Positions 4,175 through 49,524 of a DNA stretch of 64,000 nt are shown piece after piece. Numbering within the stretch: the stretch's first letter is position 1; the number at the start of each line of letters is the position of its first letter. The DNA is from Convolutriloba macropyga. Its lineage: Eukaryota. A program made the position numbers and the translations under genes. The notes below the pieces were generated by a model, which worked only from the letters and a program-made list of their open reading frames with translations, searched no databases and had not been told where the DNA came from. The DNA is taken from positions 21,824,001 to 21,888,000 of the forward strand of contig NC_134473.1 of NCBI RefSeq assembly GCF_964194025.1, read 5' to 3'.

Positions 4175-6490
4175 AACAAGGAAGCTCTGTAAAGTGTGTT
4201 CGCACATAAAGTGCTGACCCCGCTCATCCATATTTTTTGTCCCAAATTTCTACGAAATAAAGAACAGATAGAAAACACACAAAAATTCAAGAACTTTTCA
4301 AAAAAAGGTGTATGAACAAAAAGATCGCCTCCAACATATTTAACTCGATGGAGTAATTAATGCCTCATTACATGGATGAGATCAGCCATTATTAGGAAAG
4401 CAACCAACACGAACAACAATTGGCTTATATTTTCAAAAATAATTAATTTGAAAGTAATGAAAATCATAGGATAGCTAGCAAATTAAAGAATCCAGCTTGT
4501 TTATGACCACATAACGATCCAAAAGAGGATACTTGGACCTGTCATTATTCAATTATTTGTGCGATTACAAAAAACAACACTCAAAAATTAAATTAAAACT
4601 TGCGAGAAAACGCTGTCGAAGCCGTAAAGCCATAATTTGCCATTCAATACTTGTTCAGTTGAGCCTTCCTCGGATCCCAATAATGTGGTAAGCAGCTTCT
4701 CATTAACGATGATAAGTAACAAGTAGATAAAAAAATATTAAAAAAGCGCAAAATTAAGTAATAAATTTATATTTTTTCGAGAACAATTATTTTCAAAGTC
4801 ATGAATGTTATTAGCTATAAAATAAAATAGTAAAATAGTTTCGCCTATTCCTCCAAAAGAAGCGCTTGAGACCTGTATTTTTTCAGAATATGTCTTTCGT
4901 CTATAAACGGATGGTCAAGCATAGACAGAAATCAAAATTAGTTTTCTTTTTAAAAACCCTCTCGAAGCCGGTAATTTGTACACTGCACCTTTTTTGCAAT
5001 CTATGATGTCAAATAGTGTCATATGTGATCTGTAGTTAACGAGACTAGGAAACAAATCGATATGAAACAACAAAATGCTAATTTAAGACGTGTTATTTTT
5101 TTAATTTTTGGAAACAATTGTTTTCAAAGTCATGAAAACTATCAGCCATTTACTCAAATCAGAATATAGGCTAAATTATTCCACATTAAAAAACTAATGA
5201 AAGTTTTTATTATCCAGGAAATTTCTTACGACTAAATAGACGAAGAAAAAACGACAGTTAAAGATCAATGTAAAAAAACAATTAAATTCTTCAAGAAAGG
5301 GGTGTCGAAGCTGTTAAAAACATAATCTATGCCTTTAAAGACTTTTTATGTGTAATTGTGCCTTGCTTTGAGCGCCAATATTATGATATGTCAACTGTCA
5401 ATTCTGTGATAATGTGAAAAAACGAGAAACAAAACGTGAAAAATGGACCAATGCCCAAAAATAAAAAATAACAGCGCAATCTAGTAGGATCAGGGCCAGA
5501 AAACCATAACTTATCTCGTAAAACAGCAAAATGATTAAATTTAAATTCAGTAGAGAGCAAAGAAAGTAAAAGCAATCTCTCTTCGCTGACACTAAGCTAC
5601 AAGTTGACCAAATTAAGTCAAAACGACCAAGTTTTGTCGAGTAAAGCAGCCAGATAAGTTAATTTGAACTGCTTAGGAAGTCAATTTGACCTATCGACAG
5701 TGACCTTTGATTTCAAATATTTCTTTTGTAAATGAATTTAAAAAATCAAAACTTTTTTTAAAAATAATACCTAATGTTTACGATCCGGATTATGATTATT
5801 TTTGGATTGTAACAGTGCAGGATTTTAAAAGAACGAGCCTTGCGCTTGATGTGCGTGCTTTAAGAGCGCTCAATTGTTTCGAATGTTATAGATCTAGACA
5901 ATTTGTTATTTGAAAGATCAAAATTAATTGCTGGATCTTTGAAAATCATTGAGTAAAGTTAGCAAAAAACGGCACAATTTTCACTCCAGACCACTCTCAA
6001 TGGAAGTGGAAGTAGGACTAGCTCTCTTTGTTTTTTTAAAAGATTTAATAAGTCTTTTTTCTGTGTTTTTCTGGCAAATTTAATCAAAGTGTACTAAAGA
6101 AGTTTAATTCGGGCAATTTTTGTTGAAAGGGGCAGAATTTTGATATATGTAGCCAAAAGTTTAGCCCAAAAATTGAATTAAAATACTCAACAAGACTTTT
6201 TTGACTCTAAGTGTTATTGAAAGATTTTTTACATATTTTAGCAAAATTTATGAATTTTTAGGCAAAAATTCCGGAAAATGTGAATAACAATAACGCAAAT
6301 CGGTCTATTATTCACAACAATACAAACCACAATAACTCGCTCTTGAAAACGAAAATCTTTTCTATGCCATATTCTACACTGGACGGTCTTTTTAATGATA
6401 CCACTCGCAACACTTTGTGATGAATATATCGGTCGGTACCAAAATTGACTGAAGAAAAAAAACCCATTTGAAAATATATTTCCTCCTCTC
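4175..6490 (-). mobile_element. Helentron/DINE-1-like repeat, copy B
   Basis: Begins AACAAGGAAGCTCTGTAAAGTGTGTTCGCACATAAAGTGCTGACCCCGCT and is colinear over ~2.3 kb with 42822-45338 (shared AAACGCTGTCGAAGCCGTAAAG, TTTTCAAAGTCATGAA, GAGTAAAGTTAGCAAAAAACGG, CCCATTTGA..ATAT..TCCTCC). Confidence 0.7.
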
Positions 6491-9400
6491 ACTAAATTCA
6501 CAGCTTTCAACAATAAGTTTTGAATTTAAACATAAAATTGAGTAGTTCGCTCTTATACAAACATGATTCGCGTAAGATAACAATAGTCAAGCTTGAACAT
6601 TTGGTGGATAATTAACACACATTTTCGGGCGTCGTGCAAGGTGCATTGAGCCTCATCTAAGTTGATCAACTGAAAATATCGACTAGTATTGTGTTCAATT
6701 TTATTTTGTTTATTGCCGTTTTTATTACAGATTTTTTTAAAATCCAAGGTGAATGATTAACCAATAATTTTAGTAAAATTTTTTGAGCTTCATAACCCAT
6801 TGGCACTTCTGTTTCTGAAAACTTTCTTTGTTTTTTCTTTTAGCCGTGTTTATTTCTTACTGTGATGGGCTTTCGTTATCAGGTAGGTACATCAGGCAGC
6901 CCATTGATGACCGCAATCTATATGTTGTGGTCTGCGATCTTTTCTTCTATGTTTTGTTGACGTTTAGATTTCCTGCAATTCATTATGTGGTTTCTCTCAA
7001 TATTTCTATTATACAATTTTTTGCGGAATCCAAGCACTCGGAACAAGATAATCATTACTGAAATCTGAAACAAATTACGTATTAAAGTATTAACATAGAA
7101 AGTGCAAAATTTCAATAACTGTTCCATTGTTCCAAAAATCTCTATGTTTTCGACACCGCTGAAATTGACTAATTTGTTTTCACTTATTTCTGTAATTCTT
7201 GTTTTACCTTGGCTAATAGATGCGTTAAGAACTATGTTAAAAAACAAGGCAATTTTTTTACTGAATAAAAATTGGTTAGTAATTCAAGAAAACAATTTTT
7301 ATATTTTCTGTTTTATGTTTTATTTAATTTTTCTAGTAATACAGAATTGTATTGCAATGTTCAGACTCTGATTAAATTTTTGTGATAGTCTGCTTATCCA
7401 TAGACTTTCTCTCTTCTCAAGTGTCTTCTCTGCTCTTTTTTATATTTTTTAAAATGTTAGTCAAACAATGGATCTTTGGGTGGCACACGTCCAAATCTTG
7501 TGTCAGATGTATTAATAAAATTACACTTTTTCTACGGAAGGCCTTCAAAAAATACTCTGCGATTCAGGTTTAACTCGTGCTTTTGTGCGTCTTCATAAAA
7601 ATCAAATTAAATGAAATAGTTTTTGAAGAACTTCATACCAATTTTTCCACAGTTTTTAACACTCTTTCTGTCTCTATGACTGAAAAAGTAATAAAGGCAC
7701 AATGCAGAAAAGGATTCTTCATTCGAAAAATTTAATTCCGGTTTTTTGAGATTTTTATCCGCCTATACTGCGATGGATTCTTTTGAGGTTTGGTGTTTCT
7801 GTACAAAAGCACCACAATAGGCTTCTTTACTACAAATTCCAGTTGATCAACTATAATCTCTGTTCTCAGTATTTTTGCACAGGTTTATCAACCAACTTTA
7901 CAATAAAACAAAAGCCTTTGGTAAGATTTAGCAGAAGATCTTTCTGTGAGTGTCCAATATTTCGTTGGGTTGTAGATGCACTAATGCGAGTTTGTGTGCT
8001 TTTTGAATAACTCTCAGATACGATTTGAGTCACATAGTAAGATAAAATTATAGCGAAACTACGTTTATTTTGTTAGTATTAGGCCTGACGTATCAAGCGC
8101 CGAAGCCTTTGAGTAAACTAAGTAGAGACTGTACTAGTCAAGACAGAAACCACAGACAAACGACTGTTATGCAGTTTTTCCACCGGTTTTGAGAGGAAAT
8201 ACTTGCGCATTTTTAAAATTACTAATTTTTTAACTTTTACTAATTCTTTCTGTATTTTTCTTTTTTTGTTTTTTCAAAGCTAATCAAGTTTTTCTCTTAT
8301 TCTATCTAACTCACTATGGTATTTTTTTATAGCCCATTTTTTAAATAGTTGTTATCACCGCTCCCATGTAATAATTGCAGTAACAACTCTTAAACATTAC
8401 TTCGCCAAACGTGCACTTTAGAAACTTTCCACATTTGTGGACATATGAGACGTTCTTTAGTTACATTTATCCACGTTTTGTCTAAGACTTGAATTGTGAT
8501 TTAATATGACAGTAAATTGTGGACACGAGTTACAAAGTTCCATCACAATTTTAGGCATTTAAAATTAGCACTTTTCACGAACGATGAAATAATTGTTCAA
8601 ACTTGAGCATGATTTTGGCTTTAGTCTAAATCGATTTATAACTTTACCATGCTTGCTAAATAGATGATTAGATCAACATCGCTTTGTTTTTAGCAAACAT
8701 TGATGTTAATTGGATGGACGTCTTGGAAGCATCTTAAATTGGATAGAGTTTGTGAGAAGTTATACTTTTGATTGCTTCAATAAAAATCACTCAGTGCTGA
8801 ATTTTTTTTCTTCTGACGTTGAAATGGTAAAATTTAGATGCTGTCTTTGTGGACAATGCGAACGAGGAATTTGGTTACAAATTATGTGAACAAATTTGAC
8901 TGTAATTTGTAGACAGTTAATATAAAATTTTGTCATATTGATCCACAATTGCCAAAATTTAAAAAACGTGGATGAGACGGATATTTCCTTTTATGAGCGA
9001 GTTTGAACTAGTTTTTCATTGTCAATTTTGTTCACATAAGCTTATAAACCTAATCTGTTTTGGCCCCCTCAGCTATTGTGAAAGTAACAGGCTCAGATGT
9101 TATTTTTTAACATAGTGGAGCGCTATATAACATCACATAAATCGTAATTTTGGGCATAACAAATCCTATGCGCCTGAAACTGAATAGCTCCTCTTTTAGA
9201 CTGGGACAAAATTAGTGACTATCGCAAACTTTATTATACTGGCGATGACAGACTTACGCTTTGTACATCATTTCTCGTCATTTCCAAACTTTAAAAATCG
9301 ATGAAAACTTTTTACTGAAAAGTCTACAAAACGTTTTTGAATTGTATGTAAAGAAAAATGAAATGCATTACATGAGTTTTAAGCGAACAATTCTAGATCC

Positions 9401-10371
9401 AATCCAGCTGTATGTTTATTTTCTTTTCATCTTACTATAAATTGACCCGATTACTTTGGTTTCTCGCGGCTCAGAATTTTGAAGAATTGACGAAAAAAAT
9501 GGCTGTGCTATAAGACCACATATGTCACTCATAAGTGCTTCGCTCAATTTTGAAGCATTTCAAAAATCAGAACAATATAGTGGGCTGAATTTTCAGCCAA
9601 TTAAACAGTTGAGTACCAATCATTGCCATCACAATTTGGAGGTTGTTTGAGACCAATTGATCGTAACTCTTATCACCTCCACCGACTATTCAAATGTCAT
9701 CGTCTACGTGTGCACAGAGTAGCTTTCGGCAAATTTCAAATTATTTTATGAACTCAGGTTGATACAGTAAGCTTAGTCTTAGAATTTTTGAGTTGATGAG
9801 TGACAAGTCAGCCCAGCCCATTACACTTTAAATTTGAATTTTTCTGGTTATGGCAATATTAACAAACTGGTCATTCGTTTGAGAAAAGCTACATGTGGTG
9901 GTTTTCTGCCACGCATGTTTGTGAACTTTAACACGCAAATTGTACAGATGTATAATTTGTAGCTCTTTGATGTATGAATATATGAATGTTTGCATTTTGT
10001 TTATGAATGAGTAGTCATGACGTCACGCAACCATTGAATACGAGGGATAGGGTATAAATATAGTTGTTAATAGCTAAAACTTAAATTATCAATAAAAATT
10101 CAGCATTTTAATTACAAAATTAGCGTTGTTAAAAGTACAAAACCTTGAAACTGTTCCCGATATTGTGTTTCAGCATTACGAAGAATGGGGCAAAAAAGTC
10201 AAACTCATATAAGAAAAAGACAAAATTTTAGGAAAGAAATACTCAAAATTGAGGCGGGAGAGCGTCCTTGAAAGCAATTTCGAAGGTGAATTACCCATGT
10301 TATAGGTTAAATTTACTTTGGAATTGATATTCTCAAATCTGTTAGATTTAGACATTACAGAATGCACCAAA

Positions 10372-13300
10372 ATTTTTATACCGACCCACTTGTGGGAGGA
10401 GGAAGTATATACTCAAATCGGTTTCTTTTGTTCAGACATTTTTGGCCGATTGATATATTCATCTTAGAGAGTTGAGACTGGTATCATTAGAAAGTTCGTC
10501 CAGCGTAAAACTTGAAAATTTTTTAATTTTCATGTTTTACAGGGAATTATCGATGTTAAAACTTTGAGAAACATAGAGTGAATTCCGTTGTTTTTATTCA
10601 CATTTTCCGTAATTTTTGACCAAATTTTCGTCAATTTTGCTAAAACTTGTTGATATTTTTAACAAAAATGTTATTGGTTTTACCGTTAAGGATAGAGAAG
10701 GCTCGCCAATTTGTTTTATCCGAGTTTTTTGGTTAAAATTTCTAGTAATTTTTTTTTGAATTTGAGACGTTTTTAAATCAAAGAAGGCTCCAAATTAGCT
10801 TTTGATTCCTACTTCATTTAAATTTACAGGAAGTAGAGACCTGACATCTGCTGCCAGAATCTTTGAAAACTCCAAAAAAAGATAATTGTACGTTAGGTTC
10901 CTATAGGAGTTTTCTGGAATTAAATTTTTGCCAATTTTTCAAAAAAAATAAGCCTAATAATTATAAAAACCGCTTGATTTTTATGTGGTTTACTGAAATA
11001 TTTCTTTTCTAAATTATCAATTTTGTAAAAATATAGAATAATTCATAGTTTTTTGGAAGCTGAGAAAAATCAGGACCATGTTTGAGCTCATGGATTCTCA
11101 ATTTACGGCCATTGGAAAATATGGTTTGTCTTCAGAGAAAACATCATAAATTTTTTGTTTTTTTTTCGTAAATTTTAATTGATTTCTTTTTGTTTGGGAA
11201 TCATTTGTCATTCTTTTTGTAGCCTCATGACTACGTTTTATCAGTTACACAATCCACTGGGTTCTTAAAAGACTGTAGTTGCGCCTATAAAAAGCGTTCA
11301 GTTGCATTTAATGCCTTATGACTTTGAAAAAATTTGTTTAAAGAGAATGTGAGTGAAGTTTTAATTTTTTTGTCTTTTTGAAATCTCAATTCTCATTTCT
11401 GTCTAAATGTATCTTAGTGTCAAATTATGCAGTGCAAAATATATTTCAAGACAAGGGAAAAAACCATTAACAGTTGTTTTATGATAAATACTGGTTTTTT
11501 TGGTTTTCATTCTACGAAATTTCAAAAAAAATTTGTGAATTTTTTGCATATTGTCCTGTATTTGAGGTAGTTTTTAAATCATTTTTTCAACTTTTCTACA
11601 ATTGTCATTGAAAGAATGCGCAAAAAACCTTTTTTTCTTACCTCCTTGAATAGCCGATTGTTATAACAACTGCAAAGCTGTTCTCTCGCTAAACCTATTG
11701 TAGTTTTGTCTTTGTCTGTATTTGAAGTTCTTTTCATTTTTGGCATGGCGTATTCATGTCAATCAAAAACCCAAATTGTTTCTATAGATGTTTAATATAT
11801 CCATTTACTGATTTCGGATTACAGCTAAAAATTTCAATGACTTTCTCTTAATTTTTTAATGAAAATAAATTTGTACTTCGTAATTTTTGCATACTTTCCT
11901 GTAATGGTGGTTGTTATTGGTTCTTTTTTCAACTTATCGCATTGAAAATAGTTTCAACTGGCGTTGAAGGAGTGCGCAAAGGAAACTGTATGACAGATCC
12001 GTGCTCTCTCAAAATTAACTAGAACTTTTTTTTGCCTCTGAAAGCCATTTTTTTGTTGTCGTTCGGCATATTTATGACAGTCAAAGCCTTGATTGCTGCC
12101 ACGATTGTTTAACTGAATCTATTTCCTGATTCGAGTTTAACACTAAAGGTTTTAAGGACTTTCAAAAGATTTTTTAAAGAAATTTTGTTCCTCCCAATTT
12201 CTGTTATCTTTGTTATCACCAAGAAACAAAGTCCCATTTTTGACAGAACTCGTCAGTTTTCTGTTGCTATAAACCATATTTGTTTGATGTTAGTTATGTT
12301 TTGATTAATGCCTATGGAGCTTAGAAATAAGTTTTGATAATAATTTTAAGAGTTCTTGATACTGGACAATTTTTGTGGTTCTTTTGTTCTCTTTTCCATA
12401 AAGATCTTTTACTTAGAGAATCCAGTTAAAATCAAAAGAGACCAAAGCAAAAGTTTTAAAATTTTTAATGGTTTTTAAAATGTTATTGGTAAAATGGCTT
12501 CAACACTGTTGCTTCCATAAATTGTTTCTGAAAATTTTTGAGTTCTGTCCGTATTTGCTGGTTTTTGTCGTCCTATGATTTGGTGTCAATATAAACAAAC
12601 CCAACTGGATTCCTCTGCAGTTGCAAATTATGGTTTGTTTGGACTTTAGATAACACTTTTTTAACAACTCAGAGAATTTTTCAGTTTTTTGACTCTATAT
12701 TAATTCTTTCGATTTTGTAGCTTGGTCTCTCTTTCGACCGGTTGCATCCCCTTTCCAGTCAATCACAATCCAATCTGAATTTTAGTTTTGTTTTAAACTA
12801 ATGAATTCTTGTTTTGATACTACGCACTTTCATAAGAAACGTGTTATTATTGAATTTTTGCTCATTCTGAGTTTTTTGTTTTCTCTCCATTTTTATTCAC
12901 TAATTGGGTTCCTTAAATAGCGTTGAAGAAGCGCTAAATTAGCAGTGGATCTCTTTACTAATCTCCTTGAACAGCCTGTGGTTTCAAAGGTTGCTGCACC
13001 GTGTTCTTGTTAAATTCAATTAATTGTTGCTCAGCGTTGCTGTTATTTTTGCAGTCGTCCAACATATTACGGTTAACGACAAGTCTCAATTGTTTCCTAT
13101 GACGTATAGTTAGCCTTCCTAATACGCCGAGTTGATATGAAGGTGTTTCAATAAAATTGAAATTGGTTGATTTCCAAAAGCGAATCGTATATTTGAACCT
13201 TGTCCTTTTTGCTCTTCTTTGTCGGCCTGTCACCGAGTTGCATTATTGAGAGGTCTTCGATTATCCAATGAACATCTAAAGAAGAACAGGTTGATTTGTT

Positions 13301-34052: not shown

Positions 34053-34056
<4 letters not shown>

Positions 34057-34099
<43 letters not shown>
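34057..34099. repeat. (TA)n microsatellite
   Basis: About 21 uninterrupted TA units. Confidence 0.95.
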
Positions 34100-34101
<2 letters not shown>

Positions 34102-36364
34102 TATTAATCCTGAAATGGTTTTGTTATCACAGCACTTATTGGACCTTGAATTTGAATTTTATAGAAAATATACCCGGAAAAACGATACTTTCGCATTTGA
34201 GAAATTTTTTGAGTTTTGAGAGAAACGTTTTGTGTTTTGTACAAACCAAATTATCAGAGAGCTTTTAATTATCTGAAATTCAATTTTTTGAAAGCTCGGA
34301 GAAAAAAAATACATTGCTCAAGTTGCTCAAGTGAGGACTGAAATCATAAAAAAAATTACAAAAAGTAAACAAAACATTTTTATTGCGTACTTTATATTTG
34401 CTATTTAGGACCACTTAAAGATTTTGATACCTGATTCCTGATCTTTGCAACACCTATGTACGACTGTCAATTTTATGAAGTGTTTCTGAAGCAGCTTTAT
34501 TTGGCTTTCTGCACCTAATCTTCCACACTAGTGCGTAAAAAGATCTCAAAGAAGATACAAAAAATCTAGCACTTGGAGAATTACATACTTTAAGTCCTAT
34601 CAAGTTAAAAACTGCGCGTTTTATGATCAAAATTATAGTCACTCAATTAATTGTTAAACAAAATAACTGTCTAATTATAGGAAACGCCATTAAAATTAAT
34701 TGTGAACTGAAGGATACTTAACACTTATGAACTCAAAGCGGATTACTTGATTTTTTCGGGAAAAGTATCTCTCAAAACCACAAACCATTTCTTTGCGATC
34801 TTTGTTAATCCCATTTTGATATGACAGATCAAAAATTTAAAAAAAGACTCCTATTTCTGTGACATTTTCCAATGCCTGTGTTATTTTTTCTGATCACCTT
34901 CTAGTGAACAATTTAATTTGCACTGAAAATGTCTTTTGCTCGTACTTTTTTCTGGCTTTGGTTAATAACTGCTTTTGATCGCAGGGTGTTATGATGTTGA
35001 TGGTTGAGAAGCGTAAATTTCTCAACGGTAGTCTTTTTTCAATTTCCAGTGTCAGAACTTGATGAGACAACGCAGAGAGCCTGATCAGAACTTGATTAGC
35101 CTACTTTAGTTGCCCTCACAACTCTCCTAATTCCTTCTACAGGTGTCTCCAGTTCAATATTTTGTCTGTTTAGATTAAATATTTTATTTGAAAACTGTTT
35201 TTTTGCAAATTTTTTTTGAGTACAGACAGGTAGTTTGTCAGATGTCAATTAAGCTTAAAGAGTTTTAAAGTATCGAAAAGAGCAATTGCATTTGGATGGA
35301 GCACAAATCTGCCTATTTAATGCCATTTAATTGGTTGAAAACAACCGTTAGGCTAACAATTGAACTTCTTTAGTGACGAACAAACTTTAAAAGGAACAAG
35401 GACTTCAAAAAAGGCATAAACGGTTAGAAGTGGAAGAAAACTATTTAAATTTTTATATTTACAAACATGACCAAGAAAAAATTATCAGTATGGTTATAAT
35501 GAATTCTTCAGCAATCAGCCATAGAAATCAGGTCAGTAACATTTGCGTACCATACAAAAATGACAAAGTAATTTAATAATTTTTCATTTTTCTTACCTCT
35601 TAATGTTTTTAATGCTTTTTACGTATTAATGAATCCTAATAATATCTGGTAATCTATATTAAAAGTTTGTTGGAATTATGAATGTTTCCCGGGATGAGCA
35701 CCCACAACATTGCAATACTGAACAATTAAAAATCCAGAGACTGTATATAGACTTTTTGCACTTGTACAGATTATGTTCATATCACAATCTATAATGATCA
35801 GTCTTTTTAGAGTAAAATTGTACTTCTGATTTTGTCCTGATTTTGATCTGTTCATAACTATTATCATTCAATTATCAGCCTAATTAACATTATCGTTTAA
35901 CTCTTGTCAGCATAAAACCATTCTGTTTTAAACCTGTTTCAGTTCTGATAGTGCATCACACCACAGGCATATTGACACCATACTGCATCACACCACAACC
36001 ATATTCACACCATGCTATAATTGTTGAGCACCTTAAGTGTTGTTTGCAATCATCAAAAGAAAGCTCAGTTGCTTCTCTTCTCCTCATTTTTTCTTCTCTG
36101 ACGTATTTTGAAGTATAACCCCAGGTTTAATTCATTTTTAAAACTTTATATACATAATAAGGATGAGATGAAAAAAAGCTTATTCGAATTTTATTTTTCA
36201 AACAAAAAGCTTCATTTCTCATAATGCCACACTGATTGCGACATAAAGTCGCGATCTTTTTCCAGTGACTAGTGCAATATTACTAGTCTTTACCCACCCC
36301 TAACGCAATTTGAAACTCCCGACTTATTACAAACGAGTGTCGAAACAAATTAAGTCCTTAGAGT

Positions 36365-36375
36365 ACGCATGCGCA
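36365..36375. promoter_or_regulatory. NRF1/Ewg-like palindromic site upstream of the CA-like gene
   Basis: ACGCATGCGCA ~105 nt upstream of ATG 36480, close to the YGCGCATGCGCR consensus. Confidence 0.35.
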
Positions 36376-36479
36376 AATTCGGCCAGGCTTCTAAGACAAC
36401 TAATGAAACCTAACGCCCGATCTCCGGTTGCAAAGATAGATTACTTGTGTTTCAGCTCTCCGTAAAATAAAAATAAGAA

Positions 36480-36647
36480 ATGGGCGGTGGATTGACAGTA
36501 GACAAGTCATGGGATCACAAGGGTGTGTACAATTGGCCTGCTCAGTACCCCCTCTCATGTTCTGGAAAACGACAGTCCCCAGTGGACATACTCACAGCTG
36601 AGGCTAAGAAGAAAAAGACTGACTCAATTGCACAAACACCCGTCAAG
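36480..36647 (+). CDS. Alpha-carbonic anhydrase-like protein, exon 1
   Basis: MGGGLTVDKSWDH..NWPAQYP..CSGKRQSPVDI (W..W..G.RQSPVDI motif); donor AAG|gtaagt, phase 0; no signal peptide. Confidence 0.92.
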
Positions 36648-36952
36648 GTAAGTTGCCCCGCGTCAAGTTAAGCACCCGAACCCCTCCCCAATTAATTTTA
36701 CCAGCACCTCGCCCCGGTAGAGTTTCATCATCTATAGCGAATTTTACGCTTTGCATTGGTGTTTGTTAATTGTATTGACGGTCCTACATCTTATTTGGCT
36801 ATAACAAATTCAGTGAAAAACAATTCTTAGTTTGTTCACACAGACTAATTTTGAAAAAGATTGTTCTCGTGGGAACTCGCAACTGGTTGAGAGATTTACG
36901 TTGTTTAGTGCATTTTCTCTGTTACTTCACATCTTTCTGTTGTATTGAACAG

Positions 36953-37133
36953 ACGCCTTCTCTGAAATTGGACTTGTTGACTGGATCCAAAGACATAGAG
37001 TGGAATCTGGTCAACAACGGGCACACTTTCCTTGCCTCTCCACCCGATGGTGTTGTTTGGGAGATATCCGGAGGTTTACTGGAAGCACCCTACCATCTGA
37101 AGAGTATGCATGCCCACTGGGGCACAGGCAAAG
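36953..37133 (+). CDS. Alpha-carbonic anhydrase-like protein, exon 2
   Basis: Acceptor aacag|ACG; LVNNGHT (His64 equivalent), ISGGLL..PY, MHAHWG (His94/His96 equivalents); donor AAG|gtcagt, phase 1. Confidence 0.93.
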
Positions 37134-37384
37134 GTCAGTTGTTTACATCTCTTCTCTTGTTCAGTTGGCCGAACAATGGGAAAACATAACGTAGATAGCA
37201 TGTGCAAATAGAGTGACGGTTGAAAAAAAAACAAAAGCAAAACAGTAGAGGGCATCTTACTGTTAAACTCACGGAGAAACTTTTTTCCAAACATGTAAAT
37301 TAATAATATAACCGAAAGGTTAAAAAGTTTACATGCCTTCAGAATAACCAGGAATTTCGCTGTATACACTTAGTTACTCAAATT

Positions 37385-37672
37385 TTATTTCAAAGTTTTT
37401 GTAAGGGGGTGCTTCTCTCTACGTTTTTCCCCAATTACGCAAATTTACAAATCGCTGCAAAATGATCCCTCATCACAATCGGAGTCTTCCATGCATCCGA
37501 ACTGTCGCCTGATTGAAGCTCCTCGACGTCTGACGCAAATCTTCCTGGGGTTGCAAGACTTCCCGGGCTTACAATCTTTATCTGTCATACAACCTGTCTT
37601 CCCTGTTGCTTCTATAGAGGTCAGAAGGACAATGGTCATGCATATAATTCCAACTGCGAATTTTGAAACCAT
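37385..37672 (-). CDS. Nested antisense secreted Cys-rich peptide precursor (two C-x5-C-x5-C-x5-C modules; in-frame TAA at 37447-37445, possibly a pseudogene)
   Basis: Signal peptide MVSKFAVGIICMTIVLLTSIEA; module 1 GCMTDKDCKPGKSCNPRKICV; RRR/RR linker; module 2 GCMEDSDCDEGSFCSDL*ICV; then KRR..., and a final TAA overlapping AATAAA at 37389-37384. Confidence 0.8.
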
Positions 37673-37849
37673 TTTCAGTTCTTGATTTGAAGAAACGACA
37701 ACGTCATCGTGTTAAGTTTAACTTTCTCACAATGTTCACTTTAGCGAATTAATCATGTTTGACAGGCTTCAGAATTAACTTTGACCCTAAATGTGAGTGT
37801 AAACTATGACTATTAAGAAGCTAATAACTACGTAAAACGAGAACACAAC

Positions 37850-40800
37850 TGTTTTGCCTGCTCAAACTACGATGGATCAGCAGACAGTGAAGCTGCTGAC
37901 CTACACAGAAAAGGCACATGACTTTCCAAACTGGAGCACAAGATTTGTGGCAATGATGCAGACGAAGGGACTCTGCAAATCACTACTTGGGACAGAAAAG
38001 CAACCCAATGAGCCTGAACCACTAGGCAATGAGGCGAGCAATGATGAATAGAAGAACCACAAGGTGCTGAAAGATGCATATGAGAAGGAAGTTGCAGACA
38101 TCAAGGAGAAACGGAACAATGTGTGGTGCCATCTGGCACTGACTCTAGATGCAACAACCCTCATGCTAATGAGACATGACTGTGTGAGACATGGCGACAT
38201 CGGAGATGGAGCAAAGGCTTGGAAGCTTTTGCAAGAAGCTTTTGCAAGTGTGGAGACGCTGACAGTGGTGACTTTGGTGGCATAGCTTGCTCGACTGCAG
38301 CTCAAGGATGCCGAGGATTTAGTTAGCTTCTTCATCAGAGGACAAGAGTTGCTCACCAAGCTAAAAAGAAGAAGGGGAAGCAGTCTCAGAGACCCTCTTC
38401 AACGCCTTGGTCCTCAATGATCTGCCAATGAGGTATGAAAGTTTTGAAATACAGGAAAGCTTTAACCTGGCAACGAACTTCACAGAGTTGACGAGAAAGG
38501 CTGCGGAACTTCCATGAGAGCACAGCACAGAGGCTCAAGGGACAAAGTGGTTCAGTGGCACTGGCAGTGAATCGAGACTTCATGAAGGGACCCAAGAAAG
38601 GAAACTGCTTTGTGTGTGGGATTCCCGGACATTTTGCCAAGGACTGCAGGAGGAAGGAGACAGCACAATGCAGCAAGTGTGGTGAGAAAGGTTACCAAGA
38701 CAGGGCATGCAGGAGACAAAGAGATGGAGGATAACATGAGTCAGTGGCAATGGGTCCAACATTGGCGTCACCAGACGAGGAATGCTGGGCAGCTCTTACC
38801 CAGTGGAAGACATCAGGCATGCTGGTGGACAATTGTTGTACAGATCACCTAGTGACGAACATTGATGTGTTCCTGGAATTTGTGCCCATTCAATCAGTTG
38901 TCAGAAATCCCAACGAAGAGGCTTCCAGTTTAGTGGGCAGAGGCTATGTGAAGATCAGCATACCCTCAAATAAAAGGGAATTCCAATGCCAACTCAAAAA
39001 TGTTTTGTGTGTGCCGGACTATTCTTCAAACCTCTTATCAGTCTCAAAATGCACAGAGTGGGGACATAGCTTCACATTCGAGAAAGAAAATAGCTGCATG
39101 AAACTCCAGAAGGGAATATAGTTAAAACTAACACAAGAAAATAATTTGGTTTAATTAGCCTGCAGTGTTCTAGAATTCAAGATGGGTTCCAACAGCGTGA
39201 AGATTGACGGTGCAAGGAAGTGGCACAGACAATTGAATCATTTGAATCAAGCGGATGTGGCCAGGAATGCACGGGAGACAGAGGGGAAACTCGATGATGT
39301 ATGCAATGTGTGCGCATTGGCCATGATCACAAAGACTCCAGTACCAATAGTAGCAGAGACTCAAGCAGAAGAGAAGCTGGAGAGGGTGTTCACAGACGTG
39401 ATGGGACCTAACAGAGTATTGTAACGGTCAGGGTTCCGGTTCTGCATTGTGTTTGCAGACCAGTACACGAAGTTTGTGTTTGTGGACTTGCTTAAGGCAA
39501 AGAGTGAAGAACTGGCCGGCCTGAAGAAGTTTGTTCTCATTGTGGGGACGCCCAAGAAACTGAGACAAGACAATGCAAAGGAGTTGTTCTAAGAGCAGTT
39601 CAAGATGTATTGTTTAGATGCAGGCTTTCCACAGGAGAAGACCATACCAGAGACGCCGCAACAGAATGGGTAGATAAGAGGTGCAACAGGACACTGCCGG
39701 AGACGGCAAGATGCTTGCTCATTGACCAAGCTCTTCACAAGATGATGTGGGGAGCAGCAATTCGCCAAGCAATTTGGGATGCGGGTCTTCCCAAGATGAT
39801 GTGGGGAGCAGCAAGTCGCTATGAAACAGGGATCAGGAACTTGGTTGTGAGACGAGGAGGAGATAAATGCCCAGCAGAGCTGATGCGAGGTATGAAACTT
39901 AAGTTTTCAATTAGTAAACTATCTGTTATTGGTTGCACAGTCTTCACGAGGAAACGAGACAAAGATGTCAGTAAACTTCAACCCAAGGCCCTGGAAGGAA
40001 AGTTTGTGGGTTAAACTGAAGGAGAGAACGGATACCTGGTGTACGTACCCAACGCACACAAGGTTCTTGCAGTTCGAGTTGTGATCATCAAGGAGTCCGA
40101 AGTGGGCTCAATACCTGACAACACAGAGACGCTGGACCTACTAGATGAGGGGTCACAGCAACTGGGGTCTGGCACCCAGATGATGATCATCAAGACGACG
40201 GCAACAAAGAGGAGCAGGGCACATCTACTACAATAAAAGAGGAGCGGCATTACGGAGAGAGCGTGAACACTCAAGAAACGATACTGAGACGATATGCCTC
40301 AAATGTTGAGGAAGCAGCACTGGATGAAGAATCCATGCAACAAGAGGGAGTCTCAGAGACTTGGAGTCACTGGAAGACAGTGAAACGGAGTACTTCTCAC
40401 AGACAATTCGCTCATTTGAGGAGGCACTGGACCAAGCGGACAGGGCAGAGCCAAGAGGGACACGAGCAAGGAATGTTCCGCAGTTTTTTGGAGCGATCAG
40501 GACTCATCCTGCTGTGACTGAGGGTGACTATGTGGAACCCAAAATAGTCTACGAAGCCAAGCAAGGTGACGATTGGGACCACCGGCACCGGGCAATGAAG
40601 GACGAGGTCAAGGCACTCTAAGACAACGAGACTTGGAACCTAGTGAGACCACCCACAGACAGGGACGTCAAATGGGTCTATAAAGTGAAATTGGGACCCA
40701 GTGGTCATGTGTACAAATACAAAGCACGATGAAAGGCTCCAAACAGGTGGAAGGGCTGGACTACTTTGAGACTTTTGCGCCTATCTGTAAGCCAGAGACA

Positions 40801-42165
40801 TTCAGGATTCTACTTCAACTATCAACGAAGCAGGGCCACGTGACGCACCAGTTTGATGTCAAGACGGCTTTCCTGCACTCACCAATAGAGGAGGAAGTGT
40901 ATCTGCAACAGCCACAGGAGTTTGCAAAACAAGGAGCAGATGGGGAGAAGTTAGTATGCCGACCGAATAAATCAATTTATGGTTTGAAACAGGCAGCTAA
41001 CAATTGGTATGAGGAACTGGCAAACTTCCTACTGAGACAGGGGTTCACCAGAAGCAGGAATGACCATTGCTTGTTCGCAAGAGCAGAGACAGAGGGCCAC
41101 ACCTTCATCTTTGTCTGGGTTCACGACATCATAGTGGCATCAAGAAGCATGACAGTGATCTCCTATGTCAAAAAGGCACTCGAAGCAACATTTCACATGG
41201 AAGATAGAGGGAGATTACACTGGATCTAAGAATCAGACGAGAAGAGGGTAAAGTCACAGTCGACCAAGAACGCTACATAGAAATAATGCTTGAGCGGTTT
41301 CAAACGGATCTGCAAACCCTCAAGAGCTCCAGCTGATTTTAATTTGAAATTTCAGAGAACACAGAACGGAGACGAAGAAGTGGACCAGAGGATCTACAGA
41401 AGCTTGGTTGGATCACTCCTGTATCTGGCGAAACAGACGAGGCCAGACATCATTTTCACAGTCAACATTCTTTCCAGACACATGAATACGCCTACCAATT
41501 GACACTCGATGTGCAAAAAAAAGACTTCTGCGATACCTTCGAGGTTCAAAAGGTTTAAAACTTGCTTGCACAAAAGAAGCTAGTTATTATTTAGTGGGGG
41601 AAGGTGATGCAGACTGGCACAGTTGTTCTTTCTTCATGAGAAGCAGAATATCAGGGCATGGCAGCAGCAGTTCAAGAAGAATCGTATCTGAAACAACTTC
41701 TGGAGGATTTCGGCATCCAACAGAAACATCCAATAGCAATTGGAGAAGACAACCACAGTTGTATTAAATTGTGCTAAATCTCAGTCATGCACAAGAGGGG
41801 CAAACACAGTGAGACAAAATTTCATTTCATTTGGAACAAGACGGAAGATGAGACTATTTCAATTCCATACGTTCCTACTGACAAAATAGCAGCCGATATC
41901 TTCACGAAGCCTTTACCCGTATCGAAGGTGGAAACATTCAGAACTGCTTTGGTCTACGCAATCAACTCAAATATGAGTGGGGGTTTTAGAAAATTGAACA
42001 AACTATTGCCTTAAACTTAGTGAGAATTAGAAAGAAAGTTTAACTTACCAGATTAGAAAGACAATAGCAAATTGATTTTAATCAGAGAATTTATATAAAT
42101 GAATCGTCAAGAAATGGTGCTAAGAATCAATATTCGGCTCAAATCAGTGAATCTAGATAACTAAT
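37850..42165 (+). mobile_element. Degenerate Ty1/copia LTR retrotransposon (gag-PR-IN-RT-RNaseH), 5' LTR not found
   Basis: Gag with zinc knuckle CFVCGIPGHFAKDC, protease MLVDNCCTDHL, WHRQLNH..CNVC, integrase FTDVMGP/RQDNAKE, RT FDVKTAFL/YGLKQA/WVHDII, RNase H ADIFTKPL. IN precedes RT. PPT GAGTGGGGG at 41975-41983. Many stops and frameshifts. Confidence 0.95.
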
Positions 42166-42821
42166 ATTAGAGTAAGATTATTTGATGTAAAGTCTTCCCA
42201 GCATGTATTGAATGATTATGATACCACCGGAAATGTGAACAAATTCTTAAAAAAGTATTATGCATACCATCTATGGTATCCCCTGTGACTGATTTCTGGG
42301 AAATTTGCAGCAGCAAACCATATTGGGTAACCCTTGCGACCCCCACCGTAATCATGGTGCCAAGATTAGCTTTGTATCTTGACTTTATCGCACTGATAAT
42401 ATGTATATATACAGCTGATTTTTGAGCCTTTTTTCATCCCCAAAATCAAATCACCATCTTGATCTAATAATCAGATCTCTCCTGTAAATCTCTAAATTCT
42501 ACTGTAAAATAACACACTTGTTATTCTCTCTTTTTGAGAAAATAATTTTTCTACTTAGTTATAAACGCTTTTATTCCGCTTGCGAAAACCCATAACCCAA
42601 CAATCAGCATCGGAATCCTTAACCCAATCACAAAACTTTACTGGTGACCTTCAATTTTGTTGTTTTCAAATGTAGCCACCATAATGAAACCTTCAAAATC
42701 AGATTTCATTATGTCCTTTTGCAGTATTAAACTGACAATTGCTAAGATTTTGACCAACGATACTATATTTAAGGGTTTTGTTGGATCAAATTTTATACTA
42801 TTTTTTGAAATAAGTTTTATT

Positions 42822-45338
42822 AACAAGGAGGATCCGTAATGTGCGTTCGCATATAAAGTTCCGACCCCGCTTATCCGCATCTTTGGCATAAATGTCTACC
42901 AAATGAGGGACATATAGAAAACCCCAAAAACTCATTTGAAAAAAAATTTGTTTGAACAACAAGATCGCCACCAACGCAAATAACTCTTTGAAGTTAAAAA
43001 AACGCTGCATTAGATTGATGAGATCAGCCGTTACTAATAAAGAAAACCAATTTGAACAACAGAATCAAACAACAATAACAAATATCTTTAATTTCTTCCA
43101 AAACTTTATGTCCAATTTTTTTAAAAAAAATACAGATTTATTAACAAAGTCAAAAGAGTGTCAAATAAAAATGAAAAAAAAAGGAAATAGATTTTATTGC
43201 ACTAGAAAATATATGCACCGATCCTTTATTAGGCTAGGAAACAGTTAGACAAAAAGAACGAAAAAACAGCAAAGTTAATAAGTTCTCTCATTTTTAAAAA
43301 AACAATTAATGTTTGATGCAATGAAAACCATTAGATATACAGTGAAAGTATCCCAATGTAAAATTATCACAGACAATTCTATAGGGGGGCATTAAGAGCT
43401 TTCATTATTCAATTTTTTATTCTGTTACAATAAGAACAACAAATAAAGACAACAAACAAAAATTCAATCATATCTTGCGAAAAAACGCTGTCGAAGCCGT
43501 AAAGTCATATTTTGCCTCTCAAAAAGTGTTAAATGTATTTTTCGAAAACAAAGATTTTTCAAGTTATGCAAACCATTAGCTATCATATGAAAAAGTTAAA
43601 AGGGTTTTTATATTACTCCAAAGGAAGCGGTTGAGAAATGTAATTATTCAGAATTTGTCTTACGTCTACAAAAAGAACGTCAAATAAATTCAAAAATCAA
43701 AAAGTAGTTTGTTTTTTTGCGAAAGACCTGAGTCAAAGCAAGTAAATTCATAACGAAACCTTAGATTACAAAAACTTTTACACTTGCACTTTCCCCCGAA
43801 ATCAATAATGTGTGATCTTCATTTAAGGAGAATAGGTCACAAATGGACAAAAAAGAAAAATGCCACGTTAAAAAGTGTTTTTTTATTTGTTTTTGAAAAA
43901 CCATCGTTTTCAAAGTCATGAAAGCCATCAAGATCTACACAGATCAAATTATAGTTCAATTATTCCCCTGAAAAATTCATTGAGACCTGTCGCTATCCAG
44001 AAGTTTTCATGCGGCTTTAAAGAGAAAAAAAGAACGACAGTTAAAGATAAATTTCAAAAATTCAACTAAATTCATTGAGAAGGGGTTTCGAAGCCGTTAA
44101 AACTATAATCCATGCGTTTAATGACTTCTATGTGGTCAATTGTGCCTTATTTTGAACGCCAATAATGTAATTTGTCAATTGTCAGTGATGTGATAATGTG
44201 ACAAAAGGAAAAAGAACGCGAAAGAGGGGCTAAGTTCAAAAAATTAAAAAAAAATGTGAATTCTAGTAGTATCAAAGCCAGGAAACAAAAATTTAACGCG
44301 TAAAACCTCAAAAGGAATTGAATTTCAGTTCAGTAGAAACAAAGAAGAAGCATCTTTCTTTGTTAACACTAAGCTGCAAGTTTACCAAATTAAGAGAAAA
44401 ATAGTGGCAAAGTTCAATAAGCCATTGTTTATTTAAATATCAAACATTTCTAAAGCAAAATGACAATAGTCTTTCGACAAAAGAAACTAGATATACTGAC
44501 CTGAAATTGCTCAGGAAAACCAAATGGATCTATCAACAGTGAGCTTTGATTTGAGATGTCCTTTCCTCGATTAACATTTAAAAGATCAATTTTTTTTTAA
44601 AAGACCGGCTGATTAATATTCAAATGATTTTTGGATTGTAACAGTCCAAGATTGAATCCGAACAAGCCCTGCTATTGCTGTTTGTCCATTGAAAACACTC
44701 AATTTGATCAAATTTTATATATATAGATAATTTGCTAGTTAAAACATGAAAAATAAATGCTGCGTTTTTGACAATCAATGAGTAAAGTTAGCAAAAAACG
44801 GTGAAATGTGAATTCCAGACTACTCTCAAGGGGAGTGAAATAGAAATGGCTCCTTTTGTTGTTTACAAAGATTGTGTTAATGGTTTTTGGGTGTGTACTT
44901 CCGGCAAAGTTAATTTAATTGGACTGAGCAAGCTTGTTTCGGGCAATTTTTGGTGAAAACGTCGGAATTTGAAATATTTAGCCAAAATTTTAGCCAAAAA
45001 ATTCAATCAAAATGGTCAACAATGCTTTTTGGTCTTTGGAAACAAAACCAACAGTACTATTGTTAAAAATGTTTACATATTTTAGCAAAATTGAGCAAAA
45101 ATAAAATTACTGAAAACGTGAACAAAAACAACACAATTAACTCTACTTTTCTCATAAGTTTAAAACTCGACTCGATAACTCCCCGTAAAAACGAATATAA
45201 AAAATTAATTCCGCATTCGACGCTTGACGAGCTTTCTGATGATACCAGTCTCAACTCTGTACGATCGGCCAAAATTGTCTGAACAAAAAAGCCCATTTGA
45301 GTATATAGTTCCTCCCCCCTCAAGAGGGGTCGGAACAA
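42822..45338 (-). mobile_element. Helentron/DINE-1-like repeat, copy D (apparently full length, ~2.5 kb)
   Basis: AACAAG terminus; subterminal inverted repeat GTTCCGACCCC (42858-42868) / GGGGTCGGAAC (45326-45336); hairpin CCCCT-CAAG-AGGGG; colinear with copy B. Confidence 0.7.
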
Positions 45339-45355
45339 TGATGGTTTGTGTCTAG

Positions 45356-45513
45356 GTCATGGTTCAGAGCATCTGTTAAATGGTTGCAAATTTGACGGGG
45401 AGATTCGCTTCATGTTTGCAGTGAAAGAGGGTCTCAAGAAGACCCCAGTGGACACTATACTAGCAGTAGGAATGCTCCTATCAGAGGTGGAGGAAACTGA
45501 CCCCACAGTCAAG
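45356..45513 (+). CDS. Alpha-carbonic anhydrase-like protein, exon 3 (third Zn ligand His->Arg)
   Basis: Acceptor tctag|GT, phase 1; HGSEHLLNGCKFDGEIRFMF...ILAVGMLL. Donor uncertain: AAG|gcacga (GC donor, 45513) or GAG|gtggag (45486), both phase 0. Confidence 0.88.
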
Positions 45514-46101
45514 GCACGATATCATATCACCTGTTTTATCCCCCCCTGCTGTTGAAGTCAAGAAAAAAATTAATTTGATCAAGGATTTTACTTGTCTTTT
45601 AGGCTATTTCGCATACGACAAAGACAAAACTCGAAACTCTGGCCCCAGCGTAACAATCTTTCTATGTTAATTCAGGCGGGCTGTAAATTTTTGCACCATT
45701 TTTCTGGCAAAGCTAAATTATGAAAATCCGGGGGATTTTCCACAAACATGTAAGGTAAACGGTTTAACTATAGAGTTTAAAAGTTAGCATAATCAATGCA
45801 ATTTTCTTACATAATTTTGTAGTGAAAGCAGTGAAAGTGTTAATATTGCGTAAAATCATCTACAAAACTCGGCATTAATCATTCATAATTTCAACCCATT
45901 AACCGCTATTCTTACAATTATTTTCATAAATTCTCTAGCATTGACATCTCGGGCCGACACTTTACATCAAGCTGTATGGCGAAAGTAATAGAAGATTTTT
46001 GGATGTTTTGTTCGGTTCGGAAAGCGTTGCACTTTAGCAATTAATAAAGTGCTGAGGAATGCTTAAGGTGAGAATGGTCGTGAAATAGTTTCGTGTTATA
46101 G

Positions 46102-46234
46102 ACAGTGATAGAGGAGACTTTGGGTGAGAACTTAGTCAAGATAGTGGCTTCATCAACAGAGACCATAAAGATTCCTGGAATTGACTTAGCAACTCTGCTT
46201 CCTGTCAAAAAGATTAATTATTTCCTGTATCAAG
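46102..46234 (+). CDS. Alpha-carbonic anhydrase-like protein, exon 4
   Basis: Acceptor ttatag|ACA; TVIEETLGENLVKIV...IDLATLLPVKKINYFLYQG (LLP..YxxYxG motif); donor AAG|gttaga, phase 1. Absent from the ORF track. Confidence 0.88.
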
Positions 46235-46335
46235 GTTAGAAATTTTATTGTTAACAAGGAATGTATGCTATTTTGACTAATAGCTTTGTGGGCAATATTA
46301 ATCTGAACCTATAGCCCATCTGTAACCGGAAGAGT

Positions 46336-46742
46336 CCCGGTTCTTAGTAGTCATACAACGATCTTATATCTTGTCATACAAATCATAACGTATTTCCTAG
46401 TATAGTTCTTGTCCGACTCCCTTTAGTATTTCCCTTGAATTGTTTTGTGATCCTTTGCATGACTACTAAGAAGTCATACAATTCATATATGACCTAACAT
46501 GATTTTTTAAAAAATGAAGGAAAGTTTTTTGCTCTATTGATTTTGGTAATGCCAATCATGGCTCTATTTGTTGCTGTTGAAACTCACTGTTTACTTTACT
46601 AATGTATTGCATCCAAAACAATTATTGTGATCGTTCTAGGAGCTCTAAGAAATCATACAATTCATATATGACTTTTTATAGTTACTATGAATCATATATG
46701 TCCTAATATGACTGCTAGAAATATTTATGATGAGCAACCGGG
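46336..46742. mobile_element. MITE-like element with CCCGGTT..AACCGGG ends and internal TCATACAA/TCATATATG subrepeats
   Basis: Short terminal inverted repeats at 46336 and 46736-46742, with repeated subterminal motifs. Confidence 0.5.
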
Positions 46743-47519
46743 GAACATGTTAACATGATGTACGTGACAATTGAAAAGTGAGTTTATTATCTGAATTACA
46801 GAACAGACCTAATAAACTAAACTTGAAGCTCAAAGCTCGTCTATTACACCATCTGCAAGCTGGGCTGTTTTTCAAAACCATAAATTACACACAACATTAC
46901 TCTAAACAAACTAAAAGGTTTTAAAAAATTTACGCTTGAACAAGAACTGATCTCTGGACTGTTTTCAATATTTTTTGAAAGAAGATTCGACTGACTGTAA
47001 TAGGCGACTTTTCTGTTAGATTACTGTTATTTTGAATATATTTTGTAACACGATTTCAGTGGAAACTTTTGACCTATGAGTATTCGATAAAATTTTGCTC
47101 AAAATTTTTCCTTTAATTTCTATATTCGTCATCATATTTTACACAGAAAAAGTTGGACACAAGAGATTTTGTCGGGTAAAATCTTACCTTTATAAACAAA
47201 ATTAGAAATTTCGGGAGACGTCGCATATTGTCTCAACTGGAAACTTTCAGAATTACTCCAGCCCAGCATACTTTGTTATTAGTCAATGAAAAGTGTGGTA
47301 TAGTTGTGACGCGGTGAAGACAACATGCGAATTAAAAACTATGAGCTTCGGGCTGCGATAAAAAATATACATTAGGTGTTTTCAAAGCATCTGTACTGTC
47401 AAGTAAGTGGCCCGCGCAGTGTTTTGCTTTGGTAAGTGTATTTGAGATAAACAATTAGATAGGTCACAATGAGATGTCGAGAGATACAATATGTCACATT
47501 ATAATATTTTAGTCAAAAG

Positions 47520-49074: not shown

Positions 49075-49339
49075 AAAAGTTCTCAAAACATTTTCTCATT
49101 ACAAAACGAAAAGGCAATCACAATTATTTAAAAGAGCTCAATTTGTTCTTGATTCATCCAACATCATTTTAATTACCAAGAAAATTCAGTATATCTGCTG
49201 TAAATGATGTAGTATATCTAAAAATTCCCAAAAAAACTCAATTTTCCTATAATTTTTTTTTTTGGAGGGGAGGGGGGTCTCAGAATTATTCGAAAAACTT
49301 TGATAAATGATTTAAAAAGTAATAATTGCGCTGATTTAG

Positions 49340-49524
49340 GTTCTCTAACGACACCTCCCTTCTCTGAAGATGTAGTGCACATTGTGCTGGAGAAACCAGT
49401 GGAAATTTCCAGTGAGTTTATGGTCAAATTGAGAGGTCTGGATGGGTGCGATGGGCAAAAACTGACATTCAACTACAGGAGTATCCAGCCAATATGCGGA
49501 AGAAAAGTGACAAAAGCCAAGTAG
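49340..49524 (+). CDS. Alpha-carbonic anhydrase-like protein, exon 5 (terminal)
   Basis: Acceptor atttag|GT, phase 1; GSLTTPPFSEDVVHIVLEKPVEIS...NYRSIQPICGRKV; stop TAG. The five exons total 825 nt (274 aa). Confidence 0.93.

Follow-up and report, generated by a model that had tools for sequence, protein, structure and literature searches.

Does the reading frame found antisense within an alpha-carbonic anhydrase intron belong to a working nested gene for a processed peptide? The sequence-only reading of this locus had described a continuous, intronless frame of 96 codons for a precursor with a signal peptide and two cysteine-rich modules of opposite charge, the modules being separated and followed by basic sites, and had proposed that one cationic and one anionic peptide of an undescribed family are released from it. 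We followed up this proposal in the window, by which we mean the whole stretch of 64,000 nucleotides that was analysed, and in the genome assembly to which the window could be matched. The feature is very probably (we would put the probability at roughly 0.85) a dead, dispersed copy, most likely a retrocopy, of a gene for a two-module, cysteine-rich secreted peptide. The earlier observation was confirmed in part, and its interpretation is partly supported, in that it holds for the architecture of the peptide family and not for the locus in the window.

The peptide frame is interrupted within its second module

The minus-strand frame starts with an ATG at 37672 and, as it was first read, is made up of the following parts:

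37385–37672, minus strand: peptide frame as first read; a broken gene, whose module 2 contains an in-frame stop and whose 3' tail is off-frame relative to the sister copies
37604–37672, minus strand: signal-peptide-like N-terminus, residues 1–23, recognised from hydropathy and from conservation among the copies
37532–37594, minus strand: module 1, 21 residues with four Cys in the pattern C-x5-C-x5-C-x5-C, net charge +3
37499–37531, minus strand: linker, with a tribasic and a dibasic site on either side of a short spacer
37436–37498, minus strand: module 2, acidic, in the same register as module 1 and split by the in-frame stop

Much of the architecture proposed for the precursor was found as described. 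Both modules are 21 residues long and share the same spacing of their four Cys, and the opposite charges assigned to them also stood, module 1 carrying its net charge of +3 and module 2 being acidic. In P0010, the intact sister copy, modules 1 and 2 are identical to each other at 11 of the 21 positions. The linker of the window frame reads RRRGASIRRQF and has the expected basic residues on both sides of its spacer; these basic sites are present in four of the six independent copies and are altered in the remaining two (P0002 and P0004). At the N-terminus, residues 6–20 form a hydrophobic core with a mean Kyte-Doolittle value of 2.5, small residues lie ahead of a Lys at position 25, and the N-terminus is kept across the copies. 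The hydrophobic segment of the proposed signal peptide was confirmed, and cleavage after it is a prediction from the sequence.

The continuity of the frame was not confirmed. Reading from 37672 to 37385 crosses one in-frame stop, which lies within module 2, and the actual open frame of the window copy is therefore 75 codons long and leaves module 2 with three of its four Cys. The KRR motif that had been taken for a C-terminal processing site lies downstream of this stop, in a tail that differs by one base in length from that of the other copies, and is private to the window copy. The sister copies terminate a few residues past module 2, and a basic pair after module 2 is absent from all of them.

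The frame lies in a dispersed, A-tailed unit

Comparison by blastn placed the frame within a larger unit that is repeated elsewhere in the genome:

37281–37723, minus strand: whole repeated unit, matched by blastn to six other loci with sharp similarity breaks at both ends
37281–37286, minus strand: terminal A-run of the unit, at the same position as the 8–15 nt A-rich tails of the other copies

The unit is intronless and about 440 bp long, and runs from a 5' UTR of ~51 nt through the peptide frame and a 3' UTR of ~150 nt to the A-run. In the same assembly, blastn found it again at the locus pair L001/L002, at L003 (three copies) and at L004, L005 and L006, with 89–95% identity and with unrelated flanks. 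Counting the window copy, there are at least seven independent copies. The A-rich tail starts at one fixed base in all seven, varies in length from 6 to 15 nt, and is followed by unrelated DNA. The 5' ends differ between copies: L003 begins later than the longest copies, the upstream part of the unit at L005 is swapped for unrelated sequence, and the 5' part of the unit at L006 can be aligned weakly. Terminal inverted repeats of the unit were sought and none were found, and we rejected a reading of the unit as a MITE or DNA transposon for this reason. An Rfam search of the whole window gave no match.

Flanking direct repeats gave little indication of target-site duplication. One was found only at L006; it is 9 nt long, a length that was also reached in 14 of 500 shuffles, and its 5' copy falls where the locus can be aligned, though weakly, to the 5' UTR of the unit itself. 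In the same test, the window copy and four more did no better than shuffles.

The sequence-only reading had proposed a search for paralogues. Within the 64-kb window tblastn found none; in the assembly one intact paralogue was found, P0010 at L006. A protein search with the window ORF returned four clusters that are 78–88% identical to it, all of them from ENA assembly ERZ25071359, and a cluster look-up added two further family members. Through an exact look-up of a copia ORF from the window, positions 34729–47229 were found to be 100% identical over 12.5 kb to contig ctg37990_50x_l of this assembly (263565–276065), indicating that the copy in the window and all the others are paralogues in one genome. 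This is a eukaryotic host genome, covered at roughly 50x in an assembly filed with metagenome assemblies. The copy census was built from called ORFs and is a lower bound; it is incomplete, since the window's own copy is not called as an ORF in ERZ25071359. An intron-bearing or promoter-bearing parent gene was not found among the called ORFs of the assembly.

Several of the loci have features of their own. At L003 the retrocopy lies within a 1,628-bp unit that forms at least three tandem repeats (5922–9615). The same Cys is lost in all three tandem copies, which indicates that the array arose by DNA duplication after the damage. Between L001 and L002, which have coverages of 63x and 35x, near-identity extends for several kb and takes in both the copy and the features next to it; the two loci represent haplotigs or else a segmental duplication of recent date. 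The window (at ~6352–6486, 10373–10553 and 45171–45338) and L006 (3520–3714) share a short interspersed repeat, ~135–195 bp long, at 75–79% identity, and a low-complexity, dinucleotide-type repeat in the window (34054–34104) and at L004 (9117–9462) produced many spurious cross-matches. L005 carries a band 4.1/FERM gene on its minus strand (3–2171), whose single frame stays open for at least 723 codons. The best named relatives of this protein, from amphioxus, mites and vertebrates, are 43–50% identical to it and two unnamed ENA proteins are 72–74% identical, distances that suggest an animal lineage with little annotated sequence.

The host intron and its copia-like neighbour

The surroundings of the unit in the window contain these features:

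~36525–36620, plus strand: alpha-carbonic anhydrase coding stretch, matching positions 3–33 of the Pfam Carb_anhydrase profile
36956–37129, plus strand: last carbonic anhydrase coding stretch upstream of the insertion, profile positions 35–91
49339–49515, plus strand: carbonic anhydrase coding stretch downstream of the insertion, profile positions 190–252
37836–42014, plus strand: decayed Ty1/copia-like internal region (Pfam Pol_BBD and RVT_2), a neighbour that lies outside the unit

Because plus-strand Carb_anhydrase matches flank the unit on both sides, the unit lies antisense within an alpha-carbonic anhydrase intron, and the placement given to the frame earlier was correct. By eye, positions 45301–45552 on the plus strand look like a middle carbonic anhydrase exon; the 5' end of this stretch overlaps a copy of the short interspersed repeat, and the stretch had no Pfam match at E ≤ 0.01. 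When the last carbonic anhydrase ORF was looked up for exact matches, no record was found.

The copia-like element shares this intron with the unit, ~110 bp away from it, and the two are arranged head-to-head. The GC content of the element is 0.46–0.47, compared to ~0.31 in the flanks, and its gag-pol frame is broken by stops and frameshifts into about fifteen open pieces. LTRs of the element were searched for and none were detectable. We also considered whether the unit could itself be an LTR of this element and rejected this, as no direct repeat links the element's two sides and the other copies of the unit have no copia element next to them.

Distant relatives and a structure model of the family

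An exhaustive profile search with the family, covering 1.8 billion cluster representatives, yielded just four further distant relatives, among them P0005 (167 aa) at E = 1.2e-19. Since the unit recurs in the genome and the family profile finds modular relatives at this level (E = 1e-19), the pattern of the window ORF is more than chance. P0005, the cluster-mates P0006 and P0009, and P0007 are secreted-looking proteins with four to nine G-C-M-type four-Cys modules of ~21 residues, and P0005, P0007 and P0009 pass the 24.6-bit cut-off of DUF7107 (PF23416) with scores of 27.5–49.6 bits. A second search, with P0005, added only P0012, a further relative with Thr/Pro-rich repeats and a hydrophobic C-terminal end. 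The distant relatives are unnamed entries of environmental sequence catalogues (labelled SRC, MERC and JGI). As for the traits expected of a precursor, the hydrophobic core is conserved among the copies of the unit; basic pairs between modules are found in P0007 and are absent from P0005 and P0009, and opposite charge of adjacent modules is not a trait of the distant relatives. A literature search found no paper that names DUF7107, the assembly accession ERZ25071359 or the peptide strings.

Three other Pfam comparisons stayed below their cut-offs with the window ORF:

Dickkopf_N (PF04706): 24.7 bits against a cut-off of 25, over profile positions 2–17 of 51 only
Nodulin_late (PF07127): 20 bits against a cut-off of 30.4; family members score 18.6–20 bits
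DX: 19.4 bits against a cut-off of 25

P0004 scored 25.2 bits against Dickkopf_N over the same short stretch. The resemblance to legume NCR peptides that had been put forward for the two modules came down to the Nodulin_late score, which at 20 bits falls short of the cut-off of 30.4.

The AlphaFold model of P0010 has an overall pLDDT of 61.5, with values of 71–79 in the modules, each of which is modelled as a turn and a beta-hairpin, and with a disordered linker. A Foldseek search of the PDB with this model gave no match at E ≤ 0.001 (best E 0.046). The weak local matches were to squash knottins, the N-terminal region of Dkk4 (E = 0.14), the Ascaris carboxypeptidase inhibitor and scytovirin, and the P0010 modules superpose locally on squash knottins over 21–22 residues with an rmsd of 0.5–1 Å. 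A PDB sequence search with P0005 gave no match. Knottins have three disulfides, whereas the modules of this family have four Cys each; DDH is a two-disulfide fold related to ICK (PMC4942781). We take the likeness of the modelled modules to DDH or knottin mini-proteins, folds seen in arachnid toxins and squash trypsin inhibitors, as a lead only.

Most copies are damaged and have changed as expected without selection

Six independent copies were compared, with L001/L002 counted once and the L003 array counted once, for lesions and for the eight Cys columns of the two modules:

Window copy: one in-frame stop and a shifted tail
L001: two Cys gone
L003: one Cys gone and a shifted tail
L004: one Cys gone
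L005: one Cys gone
L006 (P0010): no lesions; open frame with all eight Cys kept

Damage is therefore present in five of the six independent copies. Every Cys loss is at a separate column, and the sister copies have lost Cys from module 1 as readily as from module 2. Pairwise Nei-Gojobori dN/dS values among the copies range from 0.4 to 3.8. Nearly all of the variable coding columns (44 of 49) are private to one copy, and these private changes comprise 13 synonymous changes, 30 non-synonymous changes and 1 stop. The share that is non-synonymous or stop is 70%, compared to the 73–78% expected without selection (p = 0.38). When the five damaged copies were pooled, we counted 8 synonymous and 29 non-synonymous or stop changes, where ~76% non-synonymous would be expected (p = 0.85). 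In the coding region 49 of 240 columns are variable, compared to 21 of 120 columns in the 3' UTR (p = 0.57). The substitution pattern of the damaged copies fits neutrality.

Counts for single copies are small, with 0 synonymous and 6 non-synonymous or stop changes private to the window copy, and 5 synonymous and 2 non-synonymous changes private to L006 (one-sided p = 0.011, uncorrected for the six copies). A synonymous excess such as that at L006 is expected if this branch spent time as, or near, a constrained source gene.

Alternative readings

A dead copy in the window leaves room for a family that is alive elsewhere. L006, or a source gene outside our sample, could be a live and lineage-restricted gene of an under-sampled animal, whose secreted precursor is cleaved at the basic pairs into a cationic two-disulfide peptide and its anionic twin, the latter masking the former, and whose transcript, if abundant in the germ line, was retrocopied repeatedly. 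We regard this proposal for the family as possible rather than probable.

It is unlikely that the copies instead form a live, expanding retrogene family that expresses several peptides, be they antimicrobial, toxin-like or symbiont-directed, with the window copy as a recent casualty. P0010 at L006, with its eight Cys, open frame and synonymous excess, would be a member of such a family, most copies retain the basic-pair linker and the charge asymmetry, and the unit has been amplified in tandem at L003. However, disabling lesions in five of the six independent copies are not what this reading predicts, and the pooled substitutions of the damaged copies are compatible with neutrality, the coding region is not better conserved than the 3' UTR, and the L003 array consists of three copies that share one Cys loss.

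We think it very improbable that the unit spread as a DNA-level repeat, either as a gene fragment carried by a DNA transposon or Helitron or through segmental duplication. Duplication of the unit at the DNA level does occur, as is seen from the L003 array, with its period of 1,628 bp, and from the L001/L002 pair, and a repeat of this kind would agree with target-site duplications that could not be demonstrated. Against this stand the mRNA layout of the unit, its lack of terminal inverted repeats, flanks that are unrelated right up to the unit ends, and A-rich tails that vary in length from a fixed end point.

The least probable reading is a working nested gene with a shortened precursor, in which the basic peptide alone could be secreted from the 75-codon frame: the window copy does keep the ATG, the hydrophobic N-terminus, the tribasic site and module 1 with its four Cys, but just ~50 nt precede the ATG in the unit, without a recognisable promoter, none of its six private coding changes is synonymous, Cys of module 1 are dropped by sister copies as readily as those of module 2, and the truncated module 2 would be left with an odd, unpaired Cys.

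Discussion

We conclude that the feature in the carbonic anhydrase intron is very probably not the working nested gene that had been proposed: it is a dispersed, A-tailed copy with an in-frame stop and a shifted tail, and its private changes (6 of 6) are non-synonymous or stop. A dead retrocopy explains these features best. Its source would have been the mRNA from a gene for a small, secreted, cysteine-rich peptide, of which P0010 at L006 is probably the closest intact representative, with a predicted order of signal peptide, basic four-Cys module, basic-pair linker and acidic four-Cys module. This source transcript would have been copied, and one copy would have been inserted antisense in the alpha-carbonic anhydrase intron. 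The copies would then have drifted, the window copy gaining the stop in module 2 and the shifted tail, and the window copy would have no role for its host beyond filling intron DNA.

The most likely route of copying is a LINE-mediated processed retrocopy, which would imply reverse transcription of the source transcript. As the copies have no demonstrable target-site duplications and a parent gene was not among the called ORFs, we infer this mechanism from the anatomy of the copies alone. Only ~50 nt of 5' UTR were carried along, so the copies would lack their own promoter, and transcription of the window copy is presumably absent. The peptide of the source gene would probably be secreted and cleaved, judging from its sequence, and the cleavage at basic sites, N-terminal pyroglutamate and charge masking suggested earlier for the window frame could concern only this intact source gene.

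In annotation, the window ORF is accordingly best labelled a pseudogene copy rather than a nested gene of the carbonic anhydrase intron. Most of the sister copies are likewise pseudogene copies, though the gene caller listed them as proteins. The window locus is ordinary, and the parent peptide family is undescribed. The claim of an undescribed peptide family thus stood where it concerned the design, as the conserved arrangement of two modules, opposite charges and a basic linker is real and has no named relative, and fell where it concerned the window locus, which is itself broken. Taken together, the copies reveal a predicted two-module, opposite-charge, cysteine-rich secreted peptide in this animal that had not been described, and they indicate that the transcript for this peptide gave rise to many retrocopies, with L006 as one intact locus.

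The copies resemble processed pseudogenes in most respects. Like these, they have an intronless, mRNA-shaped unit with a variable A-tail at a fixed 3' end and variable 5' ends, they are found at unrelated loci, promoterless, with independent lesions and neutral drift, and the window copy lies antisense in a host intron. They differ from the usual case in that flanking repeats of the copies are not above shuffles, save weakly at L006, and in that no parent gene was found. The encoded peptide can be compared with several known systems. The start of each module (Cys, an acidic pair, Cys, Gly, Cys) fits the first 16 positions of the Dickkopf_N profile; in contrast to Dickkopf proteins, the four-Cys module is repeated here and there is no second domain with a colipase fold. 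In legume NCR peptides, as is predicted for this family, a short four-Cys peptide comes after a signal peptide, and there are cationic and anionic variants, whereas the host here is an animal, as the encoded band 4.1 protein indicates, and the family has two modules in each precursor.

A further comparison is with DUF7107, a family of cysteine-rich repeats of unknown function, to which the peptide adds a first relative on the animal side, one whose precursor layout is suggestive. The window ORF (14.3 bits) and P0010 (12.5 bits) both score below the DUF7107 cut-off of 24.6 bits, and whereas the DUF7107 relatives have four to nine modules after the signal peptide, the family described here has two, of opposite charge and joined by a basic-pair linker. 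If the source gene is live and its precursor is cleaved in the way set out above, the family would add a new animal branch to the DUF7107 modules, one that carries its own neutralising partner.
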